DNA of 63,829 nucleotides, counting the filler, from Perkinsus chesapeaki ATCC PRA-425 (lineage: Eukaryota > Protista > Perkinsozoa): NCBI GenBank assembly GCA_013115145.1. It is 15 parts of 15 records of this genome, joined end to end, with 100 filler letters (N's around TTAATTAATTAA, not from the genome) between each part and the next. Parts side by side here need not be neighbours in the genome. Positions count along the whole stretch, not along the records: positions 33,935 to 43,887 come from JAAPAO010000915.1; 14 more parts are not named here. One strand, written 5' to 3'. A program made the translations under genes and the position numbers. The notes beneath the pieces are model-generated. The model searched no databases. It was given only the letters and a program-made list of their open reading frames with translations, and was not told where the DNA came from. Within the stretch, counting starts at the first letter, position 1, and each line of letters begins with the position of its first letter. Below are positions 33,935-44,161 of the stretch, piece by piece.

Positions 33935-34007
33935 TAGTGATACGGAGGAGGAGATATAATAGAAAGGAGTTTGATAGGAAATATGTTACTAGTGATACGG
34001 AGGAGAG
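33935..34007 (-). repeat. 55-bp minisatellite, reverse orientation, at contig start
   Basis: Reverse complement of the unit at 31346. Confidence 0.9.
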
Positions 34008-34039
34008 ACGTTAAATGTTTGGAATTTACTGTCCCCATG

Positions 34040-34670
34040 GCTCCCTGCACTCTTCAATTCGCGCCACTGAAACGAGATCGTCCTCCTCATAGATTATTAA
34101 GCTTTAAAGATGTATGTTTACCCCAAGGGTGACAGAAAGAAGACCTTTATTGTGCGTCGAACAACTTCAACTCTTACTGATTATTATAAGTTCCGCTGTT
34201 GTGTGGTCTGTACAATTTGAACCAAGACTCGCCGTCTGTAGCAAGATGATTCGCAATACGCGTTCCTGTAGACGACGATGCAATGGCCAATTAGAAATGG
34301 GTTCGTACTCTGCCATGCCAGCAGTGCTTTTGGATTTATTTTCATATGAGTATCTTTATCTAGCACCCACAGTGTGGTTTGTATCATTCCCAGGCCGGAG
34401 CTTAAAATATAGAAGTCATCAAGGGAAGTCAGGAAACCGGCGTAGGAGGAGAAGCTCATCACCTGACCCATAAATTCGCGCGCCACGAAATTGACGAGTT
34501 CACCTCAGCGTTGTTTTCTTGGAAATGCAGGTGGTAGTGCTTGTAGATCCTATTTGTAGCCGCGTAACTGAACTCAGGAAGAAGCCAGTAGACATCCACA
34601 AGGATCGAACACTCCCAAAGAGAATGCAGTGGATTCTCCTTTCGACCCTTGAAACATATTTTCTTCATGC
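34040..34670 (-). CDS. Phospholipase B-like (PLBD, Ntn-hydrolase) internal exons, partial
   Basis: [46 protein letters not shown] and [34 protein letters not shown] match PLBD motifs ([26 protein letters not shown]). Confidence 0.8.
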
Positions 34671-37600
34671 ATCCGAAGTAGGAACACGAACACGTTTTTG
34701 GGAGGCGGGATAAGCTCTTACTAAGGATGCAGTCGCAATTCTCACTAGTTTGCGCATAATCGTTGTGATTATCAGAATTGTGCGTTTATGTTTCCCACAG
34801 GACATGTTCAGTACTATTGGTGACTGCGCGTAGGTGAATATGAACCTTGTGAGTATCATTGCGAGTCGCCCACTGGGCGAGTGGTAGTATTTGAAGTTTA
34901 ATCATTGAGGTACATCTTAAAGATTCCCTTCAATGACAATAATGCGGTTTATGTTTCTAGAGCTGCGATGGTGCGTCAATTCCGACCAGAGTTGGGAGGA
35001 ATTTCATCAACCTTTTTTGGCCATCATCGGGAGCTGTATCTCTGTCAATCATGGAGTCTGATGAGGCAGTGTCACCAGGCGAAACGACTAACGACTTTCC
35101 CGGAGCTGTGTCGAAGTGTAGAGCGTATTACTGCTGACAAATGAGGGACTGACATCATTTTAATAACAACGAATGGAAGAAGTTTCACATTTTCATGATT
35201 AACTGTCATGATCGACGTGTTTAAAGGAGCATCGGGAGCATCCTGCTTACGTGAACCACGCTGAGTGTCCAAACCTCAAATCGGAGAAGTCGGGGGAGAC
35301 CTTTACGAGAGCTGTACACATGGAATGGAGGAAGATACCCCTGAAATAGCAACACTATGGCGCTTCAGCCCCTTACTGAAGGACGCAGCCTAATTGCAAG
35401 ACACTAAAGAGTGGTGATCAAAGAAATCTAAGACTATAAATTTGCTCAATCGCTCAATGACGCCCTCGGTACAGAGTGACACGGTCATAGGAAAATTTGC
35501 CGAGAAAAATGATGGGAATTCTTGTACCATTTTTGATGGAAAGCACAGAATTTTCCCCACTCATGGACAACATTCATCTTAACGATGAACCTTTCTGAAT
35601 ACGCATTGAGGCGACCGCGCTCATATTCACCATCTAGTAGAGCTTTTTCTAAAGTGTAGTTGAAATTGTCATCGAAACAGCAACTTACAATGGGTCAGTC
35701 GAGCTCCTGCTGTTTGTTATGTTTGACTCCAAGAGGGCATACCTGTAGGAAGCTCAGGGATTCGGCAATGAGCGCAAAGCTTACACGACGTCAAGTAGGT
35801 CACCGACAGCGTTGAGGACAGTGGCTATCTGCCATGGATCTGCATTATAGGTTTTCTCTGTGATGTTATGCTCATCAAAGTACCTTGATACGAAAAGAAT
35901 ATTCAAAGAGACATTGCCAAATGTAAGCTAACGTACAGAGACTCATTTCCCAGGCCCCAGATTCAGAGAGGCTTTCTTATTTCAGCCTGCAGTGGCACGC
36001 GTACTTGCCATCTGCATTGAATCGATCAAGTGACCACACGAACGCATTCCTAGGGTAACACCAAATCTTGCTAGGCATGGCATCGCGAACAGTTGGCGAA
36101 GCGACGATATCTGATTTTCCCCGCCAAAGTGCCTATTAAACTTTCGAACGTTACATTCAAATTGAACAAATTCGTAATGTATCTTGGCATTAGGAAAACT
36201 GTAGGACCTTCCAATTATATGCCACATGAGGCTCGAAGAATCTTCGGGCGGATGCAAGTCAATGTGGCCACAAGGGGAAAGCATATCAAAATCCCTCAAC
36301 CGGTCCAGCATCGCTTATTCTCACTCTATCCCAGTGGGCTTGGTATCTTTCACAAGTGCGTAGTTCTACAAGTTGCAATACCCACTGACTAAGGACGTAC
36401 TGCTGAATCCCTGCCACCTCTCCTTTGAACTGATGTAAGACAAAGTTAGCTGTTTGCCAGTAATCCTCGTGTACGTCTTCGAAGCGCCTCTGAGTGTCTG
36501 CTCGCGAGAGTACTAGAATTCACTGAAATATCAAAGTACTTTGTCGAGCTCCTTCGGATGATTTGTCGTGAGCCCCGGCTTGCTCTTCAAACCAATCGTA
36601 TTGTACTTTCAAGAATTCAAGGACGACCTGATAGATTAGATTATTCGGGCCGATACGGAAAGTGTCGTACATCAGGAAATGGTTTATCAACTTCTCCGAG
36701 GAAGTAATCTCGCAAATTAAGAAAGTTATTGATGATGTGCTCGCCAGTGATGTAACCTTCAAGGAATCTAAGTAAGCTAAATAGCAGTGAGGAGGGGACA
36801 AAGATACTCACCCTGCGGCGTAGGCTTGATGCTCAGCCGAGTGAGAATCATTGGTATCTGAAGTGTGGCTAAACTTGTTACACAATGGACTAAACCAGGC
36901 AGAACGGAGTGTCCGTCCCACGTTGAATTCAAGCACATTTCCGAGTGCATACTCTACGCCAGAACGAGATAAATAGGCGTTTGCTGTAGCCAGCGCAAGT
37001 TAGCCTGACTACTAGGAACGACGTTCATTTCTCTGTGATGGAAACACCTCAAATCGATCTAAGAGATCGTATCTTTCAGTAAGAGAGCGCATCAGAAATT
37101 CTAATACTCTACGGGAAGGTTTGTTTGAGGTGCAATATGAGCCTTACAAATCTCGAGGACACCCCAACCTCGGGCTAGCAAAGAGTCTTCAAAGTATCTA
37201 AGAGGACAGAAAGCTAACAGAAACGCGGCAGAGCCTTAGGGCATGGAGGGGCAAGAATTTTGCCAAGTGTTAGCCGATTTTTGGCCACAACTCACACTGA
37301 AAATTGGCAAAGTGCTTTGAAGTACTTAAATGGAATGATTAATGATAGTGTTTATATCAAAGAGACAAACATGTTACAGTGCGTACCCCTTAGCAGCTGC
37401 TGAGTCGTCTTCTATTCCTCGTTCTAGTCTTACTCCAAAAGAAGCACTGTGATGTTTGTTCGTTGAATCTATCGACAAGGGTGCAGCGCTGGCACTTTGC
37501 GACGAAGCGTACCAGAAATGAAGACGGAAGCCGGGTAGGTGTTAAATGAGCCAGCATCTTGAGAGCTCACAGCTGTAAGCAGTGAGGTCACGAAGGATAA

Positions 37601-39639
37601 CATTGAAAGAAAAGAAATGAGAGAGATTGTGGCACGAACGGTGGGATGAGATCTGCACGCATGCACATGGGGCGCGAGCGCTGCCCTCGGAGACTCGTAT
37701 CGAGTTGAAGGTATCGCGGGCTTACTCCTAGATTTAAGGAACACTCAATCCTACTCTTCCAAGTAACGCGTTAAACCTACGATTTACTAGAATACAAGAC
37801 GGAAGGTAGCCCGAGAAACGAACAATTCATGCCCGGAATCAAATTCTGCACGCATTTACGACCTGAGATGTTGCGAGGCGGATGGAGGCACTTGAGAAGC
37901 AGAGAATGAGGGAATGTTAATGAAATCCTCCACCAGAGCCATCACAGATCTATCTGACGATAACGACGTTTGACAAGGACTCTCCGACGCCGAGTGCGAC
38001 AGGGGCCCCGTGGAAGTTACCACAACGTGTACCTACGACAGAGCGTTGCGGTGGGCACAACGTGACATGAGAAGGCTGTGCGCATGCCGCCTGCGGCAGA
38101 CGTTGCGGATGGTAGTTTTCACTGATAACGCCTGTCACGATCATCAGGGATATGGCCGGCAATCACTTTTTATCTCACTAACTATACAGCAGACGCTCGC
38201 TGGCTGGTGATTGGTGGCACCGAAATGAATAGAGTTATGTATAGAATAATATGCTACACAGAGACAACTGGATCCCATTACGCGAATGCAGACATGCAGG
38301 ACTTCAGTAGTTAGGTGGTCAAATGTCAGAGCATCGGTCTTAAGGTGCGCTGGTATGATACTGACGGGCGCGACCGCACTGGATGGCACAGGTGCAGCCT
38401 CTGAGCATATAATGAGAATGCTAAGTATCCACACAGCTGGTTCCGCGACATGAAAGATAGGCTTGGGCATCGTCTGCGCTCGCGTTTCTCCACTACTTTC
38501 TACGCAAATTCGCGGGTAAGTGAACGGGCAAGTTTGCCAAAGTTACATACAAGATCATCAACATCATACATCAGCCTGACCCGTCCTAAACGTTGGGCCC
38601 AAGTTGAAGTTAAATTCCGGCTCTGCAGGGAGCAAGATACGATCAAAGTTTCTATATTAAAACTCGGAGATGTCCGCTCAAGTACGACAACATACTCATG
38701 CGTGTGGAGCTGCACCATCAAGCTTGAGCAGGTTACAATTGAAACCAGTATATGCCATATAAAATATATTATAGATAATTTGCATACAAATATAGCAGAT
38801 ATGCCAAAGTTCATATGCGAGGAATGTTTTTTGTCTTCATTAATAATGAATCATTATGAATGAAATACGCACTTGTCGCATAAGAAGACCATCATTGAAC
38901 GATCACGTCTGCGTGATGCGGAAAACCCTCCCTTAACTTATAACAGCTCTCGACGATCGCGAATCTCAGCCTTATGATAATAGCGCGAATACTACAAGCG
39001 TTTCTCGTACGGTCCTGCTGAGAACGCCGTCCAAAAAGGAAGAATGGGCCAGAATGGATTGAGAGTCCCGACTTGAGATGCAACATTACAGAGGGGGTAC
39101 TGGGTGCAACCTGAACGGTCGACTGACGGTTCACACTTCACATTACGCGTGTGCTCAACATTGTATTGGAATGTGCACACGGTTGGTGGTCAAGTCATCC
39201 GCTTGCTGTCCCCTTACCGCCGAAACATTTCTTCGATTTGAGGTGAAATTCAGGTGAAATTCAAGAGCAGCATACCGATTGAGTCGGTAAGAAAGTTGGA
39301 CGCCTCTCGGTTACTCAGGAATCTCGCGAAACCAATTGGCGTTCTCTGGCACTCTGGCTCGCATCATGCGAGCTGCGCGTAGAAGGAAGCCTCACGAGCC
39401 AGCGCTAAGATTTGGATTGATATATCTAACCTTTAAAAAGCTGTCCAGAGCTTCCAACCCTGCGCATGTGAGCCTGGCAGTAAGTATACTGAGCGAATTG
39501 TCTGTTAAAGCTGTCTCAATCTGAGAGTCTTTGAGCCACTGCCTTTCGTAGGCTTGCTGTGCAGGGATGCATCGAAGGGGGTGCATGCGTGCAGGACTCA
39601 TTCGATTATCGTCTATCGTATCAAACGTTTATCACATTC

Positions 39640-40767
39640 ATGAATATACACTGGAATACTGTGTCATTCGCCCTCCTTATCCTTACCGTGTCCGGAGGGA
39701 TTATCTATCGAGACTATCAGCCGGGCGATTCATTTACTGATATTATATTTCGCCAAACATGTCCTTGGAAAACAGGAATCCCTTGCTACGTAGCAATTAA
39801 TACGGATGTGAGCGCTAAAGTGAGATGCACCGACAAGTCGCTCAAGTTTGAGCAGCATACTTCCAACTCGGAGTATCATCACTTCCGTCGTGATAAGTGT
39901 TTTCTTTCAGACCGTTGTGGGATTTATTGTACTGGACATACCTAAGAAATTGTCCAAGGAAGAACAGGAAGCTGTCAAGGCAAAAGTGTAAGTGAAACCT
40001 GGGCTTCCCAAGCACGTCTTGCTGTCCGTCTTTATTTTCTGGGTCAGACCAGGAAAAGAAGGAAACCTGGGCTACATTAGAAATGTAAGTGCCGGTGTGA
40101 GGTGTGTAGCCTTTCTTCGTTTGATAAGAATGTGAAACCCACTTGAGCGATGCCTATCAGAACGCAACGGTATCGGCATATTATCACTCGGCTTGAGGTT
40201 ACTTGTTCGTCCTTGCTGTGGCATGCTTTCATTGAAACTCGTCATGCATTCGTAGCGTCCTAGGCGGGCACTACAGCCTGAGTGTGTCCATCATTCATAT
40301 CCCTTTTCAGGTTGAGGTTGACAGCGACTTTAGTGGACGCGGTATTGGAACTCATCTCATTGAGTACGGAATTGACCGCGTAAGGCTACGGACTTGAATT
40401 GCTTGGACTTCTTTTTCACCGACTGAACACAATCATTCGAACTTAAATGTTCCTTCCTGTCAAGGCTCTTACATCACACTGAAATGCGTGTTGATGTACC
40501 TTGGCGAATTTTGAATTTCGAAGTTCGGAGTAGTTAGATTCACATCTTAGGGCAAAAAAAGTGCGAGTATCCTTGCCATGACGCTGCACGTTGACAAAGA
40601 TAATGACGATGCGGTCAGGCTATACAAGAGGTTGGGATTTATTGAAGTGATGAGTAGGTCCTAAGCCCCAATACCAACGAAGTTACTCTGGTACATGCTC
40701 TAACACTTGAACATATCCATTTCTTTCAGAGGAGGATGACATGAAACTCTTCGCCAAATATATTTAG
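39640..40767 (+). CDS. GNAT N-acetyltransferase with signal peptide, copy 1 (167 aa, 6 exons)
   Basis: Exons 39640-39819, 39911-39987, 40048-40084, 40311-40379, 40551-40653, 40730-40767, all GT-AG and in frame. Motifs TVVGFI, GYIRNVEVDSDFSGRGIG, MTLHVDKDNDDAVRLYKRLGF. Confidence 0.88.
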
Positions 40768-41670
40768 TTTAATAAAGGCGAAAGCACGAAAATGACAAGT
40801 TCGCTTCAAAAAGTGTTACCAGTTTATTGAGCCACTCAAAAGCTCTTCCTCAATGAGGAATCCTCATTAAAGGGACACACTTTGTCGTTTGTCCAACTTA
40901 ACTTGAGTGACTCATTGGCACAAATGTAGGCTTTATAGGCTGGCTCCTTTTCCTCCTGCCACTGGTGGGCTACTAGCACTTATCTATCACACGATTCCGA
41001 AGTATCGTATCTCTGGGATATCCTAGTATCGTGTTCTGGTTACATCGTGAATTAACTTTTCAAATGAATCATTTGATGCAGTAAGGCAGCTAAGTAAAAT
41101 AGTTGCTAGTCCTACAGTGCGGTGTGCATTTCGACACGATGACCGCAGCATTGCACGCCCCTCCACCGCTCAAGGACAGGAACTTACTTGGTCACGAGGT
41201 GCCGAAAGTCCTACTAAAGCGCCATAGGGCGATAATAACAACTCAACATGATGAAAAACTAACCAACATACATTACGAAGCTCTGCTATCGTTGCGAGGG
41301 CTTCGGTGTTATTCGCGGAGCGCTTTCGTGTGGTAGCTCCACGGAATCCATAGCATTCGGCCTAATTTCACCGTCTACCCAACTCAGCTAGCGCTTTAGT
41401 GAGAGCGCAGACGATGGAGGAGGTCGAGAGATATCGCATCACTGCTTTCATGTCACGAGGAAATTCCTATTATCCATAATAAGGATTCCATGAATGAGCG
41501 GTTCGCCTGGCTGGATGGCGCCAGAACCGAATGGTGACACATGGGATTTTTATTTCGAAGAAAGTTCAGCTCGATGTAGGTCTTTGAGCAATCCGTCTGA
41601 TGGCGGATAGTAGGACTCCTTCTAATCCTTGAACTCATTCCGTGAAATGTACACTCTCTCCCTCTTATAA

Positions 41671-42906
41671 ATGAAAGTCTACCTACTGATATTCGCTGTG
41701 TATATACTTTCGGCAGCCGGTAGTATTATTTACCGAGACTACCAGCAGGGTGACACATTTGATAATATCATCTTCCGCGTAATATGCCCCAGGAAAACGG
41801 GGATTCCCTGCTATGTAGCAGTTAATATGGATGCGGGCCCTAATGTAAGACTTGATGATAATACACTTCGCCATGTGATTCTCAGTCGAGGAGCGCGCTA
41901 AATGCCATCATAAGTTATGACAGCAACTACTATTACAAGTCTGGTAGCGTGGCGACTAGACTCTCACAAGCCCATCTTGTCTACGAAGACTTTGGCTGTT
42001 CCCTCGTACGATTATTCCCTTCTTCTTTCAGACGGTTGTGGGATTCATTGCGCTCTACATCCCTATGACGTTACCCAAACAAGAAGAAGATGCTGTGAAG
42101 GCCAAGATGTAATGACTAAGCTCCGTCGTATTCGCTCACATCCGAGTGTTCATATTCTCCCACAGGCCTGGGCCACAGAAGGAAGGAGACTTGGGCTACA
42201 TAAAGAACGTAAGTGATCGTGAAAGACTTTTCATATTATCATTATTAGAGTAGAACGCCACAGATTATTGCGCTATTTGTGAGATCGCCGCGGACAATAC
42301 TGAGAAAACTAACGGGCTGGATTGAGACTCAATCACTGAGTCACATCCAACCAGCATGTTTGATACTGAAGCCTCCGATCCCTTGCAACTTCAGTGTCTA
42401 CGATACAGTATATTATCAGTACTAGCTTTCAGGTTGAGGTTGACAGCAGCTTCCGTGGTCGTGGTATCGGAACTTTCCTCTTGCAGTATGGCATTGCACG
42501 CGTAAGGCCACTTTATGCGCCGTACTTCTCAACTTGCACCCCTCTTCCAATTGTTCCTTGTCCTGACGAGTTTGTCGTATATCTTTTCGCTAATATCAGT
42601 GTCGCTGAGATTGGATTTTGGCTTCCAAAATTTGGAAGCATCACGATCGACATAGTCAGTTTGGTTCACATTTTAGGGCAAGCAGACTCCGAATATACTT
42701 GCTATGACTCTACACGTTGGTGAGAAGAAAGCCGATGCCATCCGGCTATACAAGAAGCTGGGATTCGTAGAAGTTATGAGTAAGTCGGAAGGTGTCTGCA
42801 CCAACAGAGCATGAATGATCTGATCCTTTTACCCAACTAAACGTGGGGTATGTTATTTATTTCAGAGAAAGGGGACCTAGAGCTCTTCGCCCTCTACTTC
42901 GTTTAA
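41671..42906 (+). CDS. GNAT N-acetyltransferase with signal peptide, copy 2 (168 aa, 6 exons)
   Basis: Exons 41671-41844, 42032-42108, 42166-42208, 42433-42501, 42677-42779, 42866-42906, same intron phases as copy 1. Motifs TVVGFI, VEVDSSFRGRGIG, MTLHVGEKKADAIRLYKKLGF. Confidence 0.88.
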
Positions 42907-44161
42907 ATGGGAGGCAAAAGCAACGAAAGGATGCGTTACAAATAAAGGCGTGTCAGCTCATGTTCGAAAGACAAAGCTTTTTAGTAAAATTCATCTATTC
43001 GAGGAACAAAGTTCGTTATACGGCGCGCTTGCTTTGCAGTCCCATGCCGTATTAGAACTCGATATCCCGACTACGGGATAGTACAACTTTCCAGTATCGT
43101 ATCCCTCAGTTAGGCAAAACTATTCCACGTATTCTCCGAAGAAGTTCTGAGTTCTGAAAGTATCGTTAATAAAACTAGAAGAAAGCTTTTAGCCCCCTTC
43201 TCATACACTCTTGTCTTACAGCGCAAGGCTGGTCACGTATGTGTAAGACTTACACGTACGTAACAAAGCTGCATGTTAAAACAACCATCCCACGATCAGA
43301 GCTAGTGTAATCGTAATCCGAGACGACTACCAAACTTCATGCTTTGAGGTGAAGTGTGTCACAGACGACAACAAACTTCAAAGCCAAACAAAATCATGGT
43401 CGGCCTGGTTCTGCTCAGAGATTTGGGTGTTTGAGTCTGCCCGGGTCCATGGAGCCCGTGGCCCGGACTGTCCATGTGACTCGCATGAAGTACGGACAGA
43501 GAGTCAAAAGTGTGAGCATCTCCAAGTCGTTTTCAGGAGCGGGCGCCTAACATGATTTTTGCGCGGCTGCAAAAGTTCTGTTAGGATGACCGTGTTTCCC
43601 GGGAGCGGAGGGATGGGCCAAGAAAAATCTCACGTAAAACGTGGGAAAGTTGCAATTGTCTCACTGGCTCGTCGATAGACTCAAGATTTCGAAACTGAAA
43701 GATATGTGGTGCGCGGGATATGCTACTCTGCGCAGCCGTAATATACTGATAAGCGGATCGAGCGTGCGAATGTAGCGGCTGTGGAATCTCTAGAGATTAA
43801 GGGAGTACCGCACTCACACCCCAAATAATTTCAGACACAATGCACGAAACAAAGATATTGGATTTGCACTACATTGAAGCACCCTCCNNNNNNNNNNNNN
43901 NNNNNNNNNNNNNNNNNNNNNNNNNNNNNNNTTAATTAATTAANNNNNNNNNNNNNNNNNNNNNNNNNNNNNNNNNNNNNNNNNNNNGTCGAATCGATTC
44001 TCATCAAACGTTGCATTTCAGCGAAATGACTTCACTCCACCAAACTTCAACTCAACTTCTAAAGGTGTTTCGAATAACCCCTTAAATACCAGTGGTTTAA
44101 ATCGGGAACAAATGACAAATGTTGACAAGTTACCAGACCTCATACAGGTAGGGTAAGCTGT

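Follow-up and report, generated by a model that had tools for sequence, protein, structure and literature searches.

N-terminal acetyltransferases (NATs) are, to our knowledge, regarded as cytosolic enzymes that act at the ribosome or on a membrane face. The closest described system, human NAA60 (hNAA60), attaches to the Golgi by a C-terminal amphipathic helix (PMC4993997). Within the mammalian endoplasmic reticulum (ER), the transporter AT-1/SLC33A1 imports acetyl-CoA for the luminal GNATs ATase1/NAT8B and ATase2/NAT8 (PMC8041774, PMC7820588). In Apicomplexa, secreted proteins are N-acetylated, the enzyme responsible is still being sought, and none of the Plasmodium candidates has a signal peptide; Pf3D7_1437000 and its Toxoplasma homologue, an ER GNAT with a predicted luminal domain, have been put forward as a candidate for the N-acetylation of secretory proteins, and upon Pf3D7_1437000 depletion the acetylation of the tested exported proteins was unchanged (PMC10038149). 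Here we analysed two tandem GNAT genes, gene 1 and gene 2, in a window of 63,829 nucleotides that joins 15 parts of the Perkinsus chesapeaki ATCC PRA-425 assembly GCA_013115145.1, all positions below being counted along that whole stretch. P. chesapeaki, an alveolate, parasitises clams. Both genes encode a GNAT domain that directly follows a hydrophobic leader, and we consider it somewhat better than an even chance (roughly 55%) that their products are cleaved, soluble acetyltransferases of the secretory pathway.

Two tandem genes fused in one public model

The genes reside on JAAPAO010000915.1 (window 33935-43887), a contig of 9,953 bp with 45% GC that is eukaryotic in character, with short stop-free stretches and introns of 57-226 nt bounded by canonical GT..AG. 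Their structures, and the stretch that the public annotation takes for an intron, are as follows.

39640..40767, plus strand: gene 1, 167 amino acids (aa), six exons at 39640-39819, 39911-39987, 40048-40084, 40311-40379, 40551-40653 and 40730-40767; stop codon TAG at 40765-40767
41671..42906, plus strand: gene 2, 168 aa, six exons at 41671-41844, 42032-42108, 42166-42208, 42433-42501, 42677-42779 and 42866-42906; stop codon TAA at 42904-42906
40380..42031, plus strand: false public "intron" of ~1.65 kb, in reality the last two exons of gene 1, the intergenic spacer and the first exon of gene 2

All introns of both genes are GT..AG, the frames are intact with zero internal stops, and the intron positions and phases are identical between the two. 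An exon comparison within the piece paired each gene 2 exon with its gene 1 counterpart, no third gene copy was found in the piece at 33935-43887, and scans of the piece for Rfam families, tRNAs and repeats returned only these exon-to-exon repeats. The original prediction, made from the DNA letters, had placed two intact paralogs at 39640-42906; this interval runs exactly from the gene 1 ATG to the gene 2 stop, both copies are indeed intact, and the residues it quoted, namely the two leaders, the IIYRDYQ.GD strand, SGRGIG in copy 1 and KDNDDA versus EKKADA, had all been read correctly.

The gene 1 and gene 2 proteins share 64% identity, and their exons are 63-75% identical at the DNA level, with introns and flanks at about the level of shuffled controls. 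The pair is an old tandem duplication with purifying selection on both copies, because the synonymous divergence (dS) reaches ~1.3 and the ratio of nonsynonymous to synonymous divergence (dN/dS) is 0.16. The same interval is also the span of FOL47_011042 (KAF4652519.1, P0001, 231 aa), the sole public model at the locus, to which the domain Acetyltransf_1 (PF00583) is assigned and which consists of gene 1 exons 1-4 joined to gene 2 exons 2-6. This annotation is in error: it fuses two separate genes into a chimera, duplicating the centre of the domain and leaving out the last two exons of gene 1 and the first of gene 2. Database searches were run exon by exon or via the public proteins of paralogs, and exons were joined by window coordinates only for the frame check, the pairwise comparison, dN/dS, the motif table and the tree.

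A family-wide leader and an invariant cysteine pair

Two elements, both encoded in exon 1, carry the case for a non-cytosolic destination.

39640..39696, plus strand: gene 1 leader, residues 1-19, MNIHWNTVSFALLILTVSG; the β1 motif begins at residue 21 (39700)
41671..41721, plus strand: gene 2 leader, residues 1-17, MKVYLLIFAVYILSAAG; the β1 motif begins at residue 19 (41725)
39760..39786, plus strand: gene 1 cysteine pair, C41 (39760-39762) and C49 (39784-39786), in the motif C-x7-C-Y-V-A
41785..41811, plus strand: gene 2 cysteine pair, C39 (41785-41787) and C47 (41809-41811)

The hydrophobic leader measures 17-20 residues in gene 1 and gene 2, and one was present in all 23 family members examined. 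It starts with Met and, in most cases, a K or R at position 2, runs through an apolar core of 10-17 residues and ends in small residues (A/G/S/T); in many members a charged residue separates these from the I-x-Y-R-D-Y-x-x-G-D strand. Endings before β1 such as SAAG/S, VSG/G, STA/D, AAA/E and VTG/E place small residues at -3 and -1 in most members, and by rule-of-thumb analysis the family displays the layout of a classical cleavable signal peptide, with n-, h- and c-regions at the extreme N-terminus. The difference in flanking charge across the core was negative in 19 of the 23, and translocation of the domain is therefore predicted by the positive-inside rule (N-in, C-out).

The leader codons of both genes are contiguous and in frame with β1 in one exon. 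No Met lies between the start and β1 in any family member, and in-frame stops occur upstream of both ATGs, with a TAA directly before gene 2 at 41668-41670, so that a leaderless intact domain could not arise by alternative initiation. An MMETSP transcript of a paralog (P0007) likewise has an open reading frame (ORF) beginning with the leader, and the same exon 1 was seen in an independent assembly (L084). The leader directly abuts the domain, as originally proposed, with no spacer of transit-peptide length: the gap to β1 is 1-3 residues in gene 1 and gene 2 and 0-3 across the P. chesapeaki members. In agreement with this, the AlphaFold model of the paralog P0015 has residues 1-20 unstructured, β1 at 21-25 and the leader outside the fold, and every structural alignment of that model starts at residues 18-21. 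Being found in 23/23 members and lying outside the modelled fold, the leader is a real feature and not a product of chance. Between gene 1 and gene 2 its dN/dS is 0.43 versus 0.14 for the rest of the protein, with hydrophobicity kept, and faster evolution with retained hydrophobicity is typical of signal peptides. Neither KDEL/HDEL nor a conserved glycosylation sequon was present in the family members.

Downstream of β1, the two cysteines (Cys-a and Cys-b) are both Cys in 15/15 aligned members and invariant in alignments A3, A4 and A5. In the P0015 model they occupy the end of helix α1 and the first residue of strand β2, and in the alignment with Arabidopsis NAA60, Cys-b faces a non-Cys residue and Cys-a falls just upstream of the aligned stretch. 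The relatives in P. olseni keep the pair at a shorter spacing. A disulfide between Cys-a and Cys-b is plausible, and the pair is best read as a second mark of a non-cytosolic protein. Because the leader is kept family-wide, the charge difference is mostly negative, the Cys pair is invariant and no alternative start is available, secretory entry, which the original prediction had favoured, is also our best reading; that the proteins enter the pathway in one form or another seems to us quite probable.

Enzyme kind, catalytic residues and family

Acetyltransf_1 scored above the Pfam cut-off in 10/10 full-length paralogs, with a best E of 5.6e-17; in the exon-by-exon search, gene 1 and gene 2 exons 4 and 5 matched co-linear Acetyltransf_1 positions 66-86 and 95-116, below the cut-off set for whole proteins. 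The P0015 model (predicted local distance difference test, pLDDT, 89; predicted template modelling score, pTM, 0.81) has the mixed α/β GNAT fold, in the order β1-α1-β2-4-α3-β5-α4-β6-7, and its top PDB matches were all GNATs with Z > 14. Arabidopsis NAA60 (6tgx) was the best solved relative by family profile (E 4.6e-11, profile positions 45-156), was also first by single sequence (gene 2 exons 2-6), and was first by structure as well (VIA Z 16.6, root-mean-square deviation 2.8 Å over 147 residues, 22% identity, for the P0015 model). We take the family, from sequence and model, to be NAT-type GNATs nearest NAA60 without firm orthology, since Ard1, hNAA60, NAA30, RimI and TacT/AtaT lie within ~1 Z unit of Arabidopsis NAA60 and identity to NAA60 is ~20%. 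The earlier assignment to the RimI/NAA type, for which structure prediction and a Foldseek search had been proposed as a check, agrees with these relatives and with the GNAT fold obtained for P0015.

The residues expected to bear on catalysis and cofactor binding were located as follows.

40073..40075, plus strand: gene 1 Tyr95, in strand β4 (GYI), equivalent of the NAA60/NAA50 catalytic Tyr
40587..40589, plus strand: gene 1 His134, in strand β5 (LHV), equivalent of the NAA60/NAA50 catalytic His
40332..40349, plus strand: gene 1 motif A (acetyl-CoA pyrophosphate loop), SGRGIG
42454..42471, plus strand: gene 2 motif A, RGRGIG, the canonical R-x-x-G-x-G

In hNAA60, activity needs Tyr97 and His138 (PMC4993997). 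When gene 2 was aligned with Arabidopsis NAA60, GYI fell on VYI (Tyr on Tyr) and TLHV on YLHV (His on His). Across the 15 aligned members the β4 Tyr is kept in nine; the β5 His occurs in three, gene 1 and gene 2 included, and is replaced elsewhere by Y, L, N, F, R, D or T. Both NAA50/60-type catalytic residues are present in 3/15 members, with gene 1 and gene 2 among them. The loss of the β5 His suggests, at the level of sequence, a changed mechanism or substrate, or lost activity, in much of the family. Each copy had been said to deviate at a different consensus site, and the residues named were correct; they do not stand as signs of decay. In motif A, Ser at position 1 is confined to gene 1, the other 14 of 15 members having R or Q, and the rest of the loop is well kept (position 4 G in 14/15, position 5 I in 15/15, position 6 G or A in 15/15). 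The position 1 side chain is not essential for cofactor binding in GNATs. The motif-B Asn is N in only 6/15 members, and the Lys of gene 2 lies within the family range. As the motif-B Asn is variable, the motif A glycines are intact and the catalytic pair is kept, neither gene 1 nor gene 2 looks degenerate. We expect both products to be active in transferring acetyl from acetyl-CoA to protein amino groups, because the acetyl-CoA loop, the α4 Tyr (14/15 members) and the Tyr/His pair are all kept in them.

Both proteins end at β7, as does P0015, whose last strand covers E164-170 of 171 residues, and a C-terminal helix is absent. The P0015 model further has a short α1-β2 region and a β6-β7 turn of 3 residues. 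In NATs the peptide site takes its shape from these two elements, and with both of them short here, the substrate site may be more open in this family.

Family membership was established by an exhaustive HMMER search with a two-sequence exon-1 profile built from gene 1 and gene 2 (E <= 0.001), which returned 23 matches. The family-like ones are mostly 165-190 aa and align from their residues 1-10, so that the leader is N-terminal in them too; P0012, P0018, P0019 and P0020 (594-1,477 aa), which matched in multiple stretches, were taken as unrelated. Among 20 matches looked up, all but three are P. chesapeaki proteins; one match is an MMETSP transcript and another derives from an unrelated sequencing run. 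In a word-index profile search, more paralogs from P. chesapeaki came up along with a few relatives from P. olseni, and the matches ranked below these were all generic bacterial GNATs. From these matches we count at least 23 genes in P. chesapeaki and about 25 in all. The members are named in databases as hypothetical or "N-acetyltransferase domain-containing", and no published description of the family was found in the literature on Perkinsus signal peptides, acetyltransferases or secretome.

The exhaustive exon-1 profile search found no relatives outside Perkinsus, a word-index search with exon 1 gave no match, and a metagenome scan with the exon-1 profile yielded no relatives. A metagenome scan with the full family profile recovered generic bacterial GNAT cores (residues 98-162), many from gut, none with the family-specific N-terminus, and the ESM Atlas held generic GNAT clusters only. 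The sole match of a bacterial and archaeal genome scan, L001, was rejected as spurious, being a 531-aa protein on a 68% GC contig with only KTGIPCYVA in common, and a recent bacterial origin is therefore without support.

Tandem arrays are the usual arrangement of the family. P0027, P0004 and P0015 are three consecutive genes, and P0015 and P0004, on another contig than the window pair, have the same six-exon layout as gene 1 and gene 2. L002 (JAAPAO010000098.1) carries three members in tandem on one strand, adjoining a proteasome RPN7 gene. The maximum-likelihood tree, its root not established, placed gene 1 and gene 2 as sisters (support 83/72) and set the P. chesapeaki paralogs apart from P. 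olseni (89/98), which is consistent with an expansion in the P. chesapeaki lineage. The family size and phylogeny called for by the original prediction are thus supplied, with the two genes as each other's closest kin.

Several members call for comment in their own right. In P0002 (FOL47_011338, 267 aa) the N-terminal half occurs twice, and the model resembles a tandem pair merged into one; the MMETSP sequence P0007 corresponds to the first copy alone. P0014 (FOL47_006457, 432 aa) is a model without leader whose C-terminal half is unrelated and looks mis-built, and P0027 (FOL47_011320) has an odd N-terminus of 80 residues, so that its model looks faulty. Public models thus hide separate genes at the present locus and probably at one or more other tandem pairs too. 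In P. olseni P0028, P0029, P0030, P0033 and P0034 the leader is kept and is followed by a spacer of 10-20 residues before β1, for example the partly basic YLPPRRSLAN; this spacer, missing from P. chesapeaki, might serve as a propeptide or in sorting. L084:167-1625, a Logan assembly of run SRR12548988 with 45% GC, encodes a multi-exon member with leader, Cys pair, motif A and motif B and has zero DNA similarity to the window.

Elsewhere on the contig, Pfam scans of the flanking stop-free stretches returned one phospholipase-B exon and one sub-threshold Flo11 match only.

34187-34504 and 35251-37603, minus strand: phospholipase-B (PF04916) gene, upstream of gene 1
36523-36807, minus strand: weak Flo11-domain match (E 1.7e-4, below the Pfam cut-off) inside the phospholipase-B span, probably a chance match

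The phospholipase-B exon at 34187-34504 is a strong match (profile positions 207-263, E 6e-14) and falls beyond the 3' end of the public 264-aa model, which does not include it and is therefore probably truncated; the gene may run off the contig edge.

Route, destination and comparison with known systems

A sequence of events consistent with these features can be proposed. The leader would bring the nascent chain co-translationally into the ER, where signal peptidase would cut after the small residues, 0-3 residues before β1, and the two invariant cysteines, which flank the α1-β2 loop, would be oxidised to a disulfide in the lumen. A soluble protein of ~17 kDa without an ER-retention signal would then follow the secretory route, and the enzyme would acetylate protein amino groups with acetyl-CoA either in the secretory lumen of the parasite or in the host cell after release. 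On this proposal, an N-terminal cleavable signal peptide would stand in place of the C-terminal membrane helix of NAA60.

As to where the products end up, the strength of purifying selection on gene 1 and gene 2, and the catalytic pair that both have kept intact, would suit a luminal role as well as a released one. We lean towards a released or host-interaction role because of the lineage expansion, the tandem arrays, the divergence of the paralogs and the lack of a retention signal. As a specific destination, release or host delivery is a tentative choice at best and action in the lumen a doubtful one, the remaining probability going to other or unassigned sites. A narrower possibility, which we rate as distinctly unlikely, is that the family are true luminal N-terminal acetyltransferases, soluble in ER, Golgi or secretory organelles and acting on N-termini exposed by signal-peptide or maturase cleavage.

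Several points weigh against cleaved, secreted and active enzymes. The leader was judged by rules of thumb (n-region, apolar core and -3/-1 residues), the n-region of gene 1 is without K or R, and in both genes the apolar run merges into β1, giving about 17-23 uncharged residues and making an uncleaved anchor conceivable for these two proteins. The fold was taken from P0015, a paralog 50% identical to the window proteins, a word search with the FOL47_011042 sequence turned up no protein derived from a gene 1 or gene 2 transcript, and with the β5 His lost in most paralogs, activity or mechanism may differ across the family.

Were the leader left uncut, the products would sit in the ER or Golgi membrane in type II orientation, with the GNAT domain facing the lumen, like ATase1/NAT8B and ATase2/NAT8 in lysine acetylation. 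The flanking charges give the same N-in, C-out orientation for such an anchor, the long uncharged run of gene 1 and gene 2 that continues into β1 would suit it, luminal type II GNATs are an established kind (PMC8041774), and apicomplexan ER GNATs with transmembrane segments and a luminal domain have been reported (PMC10038149). We nevertheless consider an anchor unlikely: the apolar core of most members is 10-15 residues with a charged residue at once after it, which is short for a stable span, no stem is present, β1 following 0-3 residues past the core, and small residues sit at -3/-1 in most members. An NAT8-like arrangement, with a span of ~18 or more residues and then a stem, was not seen in most members, and gene 1 and gene 2 are ambiguous in this respect as the core runs into β1. 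The N-terminus might instead tether an NAA60 (NatF)-like enzyme to the cytosolic face of an organelle, where cytosol-facing N-termini of membrane proteins would be acetylated with cytosolic acetyl-CoA. NAA60 is the top relative by sequence and fold and is itself membrane-bound via a hydrophobic or amphipathic element (PMC4993997), and the problem of cofactor supply would disappear; but the positive residue on the N-flank and the acidic C-flank are the opposite of what an N-out topology needs, with the difference negative in 19/23, the Cys pair is invariant with Cys-b opposite a non-Cys residue in NAA60, and ~25 divergent paralogs with a variable catalytic His are unlike a housekeeping NatF. 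We therefore rate this cytosol-facing arrangement as improbable.

Perkinsus routes proteins of its relict plastid through the ER, and the leader could be the first half of a bipartite signal for that organelle, making the products organellar GNATs akin to plant plastid NATs. Chloroplast NATs are mentioned in work on the apicomplexan enzymes (PMC10038149), and the partly basic spacer of 10-20 residues in the P. olseni relatives would fit; in all P. chesapeaki members the 0-3 residues from leader to β1 leave no room for a transit peptide, and plastid targeting is to us the least probable of the alternatives. Scarcely more credible is an artefact of the gene models, in which case the mRNAs would begin at some other point, or the hydrophobic stretch would be untranslated or lie inside the protein, leaving ordinary cytosolic GNATs as the products. 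The chimeric annotation at the locus, the faulty models of P0002, P0014 and P0027 and the missing transcript-derived protein for gene 1 and gene 2 in the word search all speak for it. Against it stand the contiguity of leader and β1 in frame in the same exon, the lack of an intervening Met in any member together with the in-frame stops upstream, the presence of the leader in 23/23 members despite saturated synonymous divergence, the paralog transcript P0007 whose ORF starts with the leader, and the same exon 1 in the independent assembly L084.

Soluble, cleaved enzymes of the secretory pathway thus remain our preferred reading, and an NAA60-like family with a conserved leader and Cys pair would be a clear case of NAT chemistry in or through that pathway. 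It would bear on a question in alveolate parasites, namely which enzyme acetylates secretory and exported proteins, and if the family were indeed luminal NATs, it would offer the first concrete enzyme type to test for apicomplexan secretory N-acetylation, from a myzozoan relative. For Perkinsus, a major pathogen of shellfish from which mostly proteases are known as extracellular products, the family would be a new candidate class of secreted factors; at least 23 paralogs in P. chesapeaki versus few in P. olseni suggest lineage-specific adaptation.

Compared with the systems described so far, the bacterial tRNA-acetylating toxins TacT, AtaT and KacT resemble the family in structural score (Foldseek rank 1, Z 14-16.5 with the P0015 model). 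An identity with these toxins was rejected: they are 11-16% identical and absent from the sequence searches, no antitoxin context was seen, and the Perkinsus genes are eukaryotic with introns, so the GNAT fold is all they have in common. The cyst-nematode effector candidate Hg-GLAND1 is likewise a parasite protein that has both a signal peptide and a GNAT domain, with host action proposed, but originated by horizontal transfer from bacteria (PMC4828791), whereas the Perkinsus family is intron-rich and NAT-like and has no close bacterial relative. Pf3D7_1437000 is also an alveolate GNAT with a predicted ER-luminal domain; it differs in that it has two predicted transmembrane domains, lacks a signal peptide and is restricted to Apicomplexa (PMC10038149), and it was not among the matches of the exon-1 profile search, which were from Perkinsus only. 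ATase1 and ATase2 place a GNAT catalytic domain inside the secretory pathway, indicating that acetyl-CoA chemistry is feasible there, although no specific sequence relationship to the Perkinsus family was found.

NAA60/NatF is the nearest system. The long β3-β4 segment aligns, the catalytic Tyr and His are present in gene 1 and gene 2, UniRef names one P. olseni member "N-alpha-acetyltransferase 60", and NAA60 is membrane- or organelle-associated rather than ribosome-bound, as is predicted for the Perkinsus family. Unlike NAA60, the Perkinsus proteins lack a C-terminal amphipathic membrane helix and end at β7, and they carry instead an N-terminal signal-peptide-like leader with an N-in/C-out charge bias in 19/23 members and an invariant Cys pair in a shortened α1-β2 region, with a β6-β7 turn of 3 residues in the model. 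They also form ~25 divergent paralogs, mostly without the His, at ~20% identity to NAA60 and with a structural score tied with those of Ard1, NAA30 and TacT. What would be new here, on the best reading, is an NAT-type GNAT with a signal peptide and a Cys pair, without the membrane helix of NAA60, expanded in one parasite lineage.

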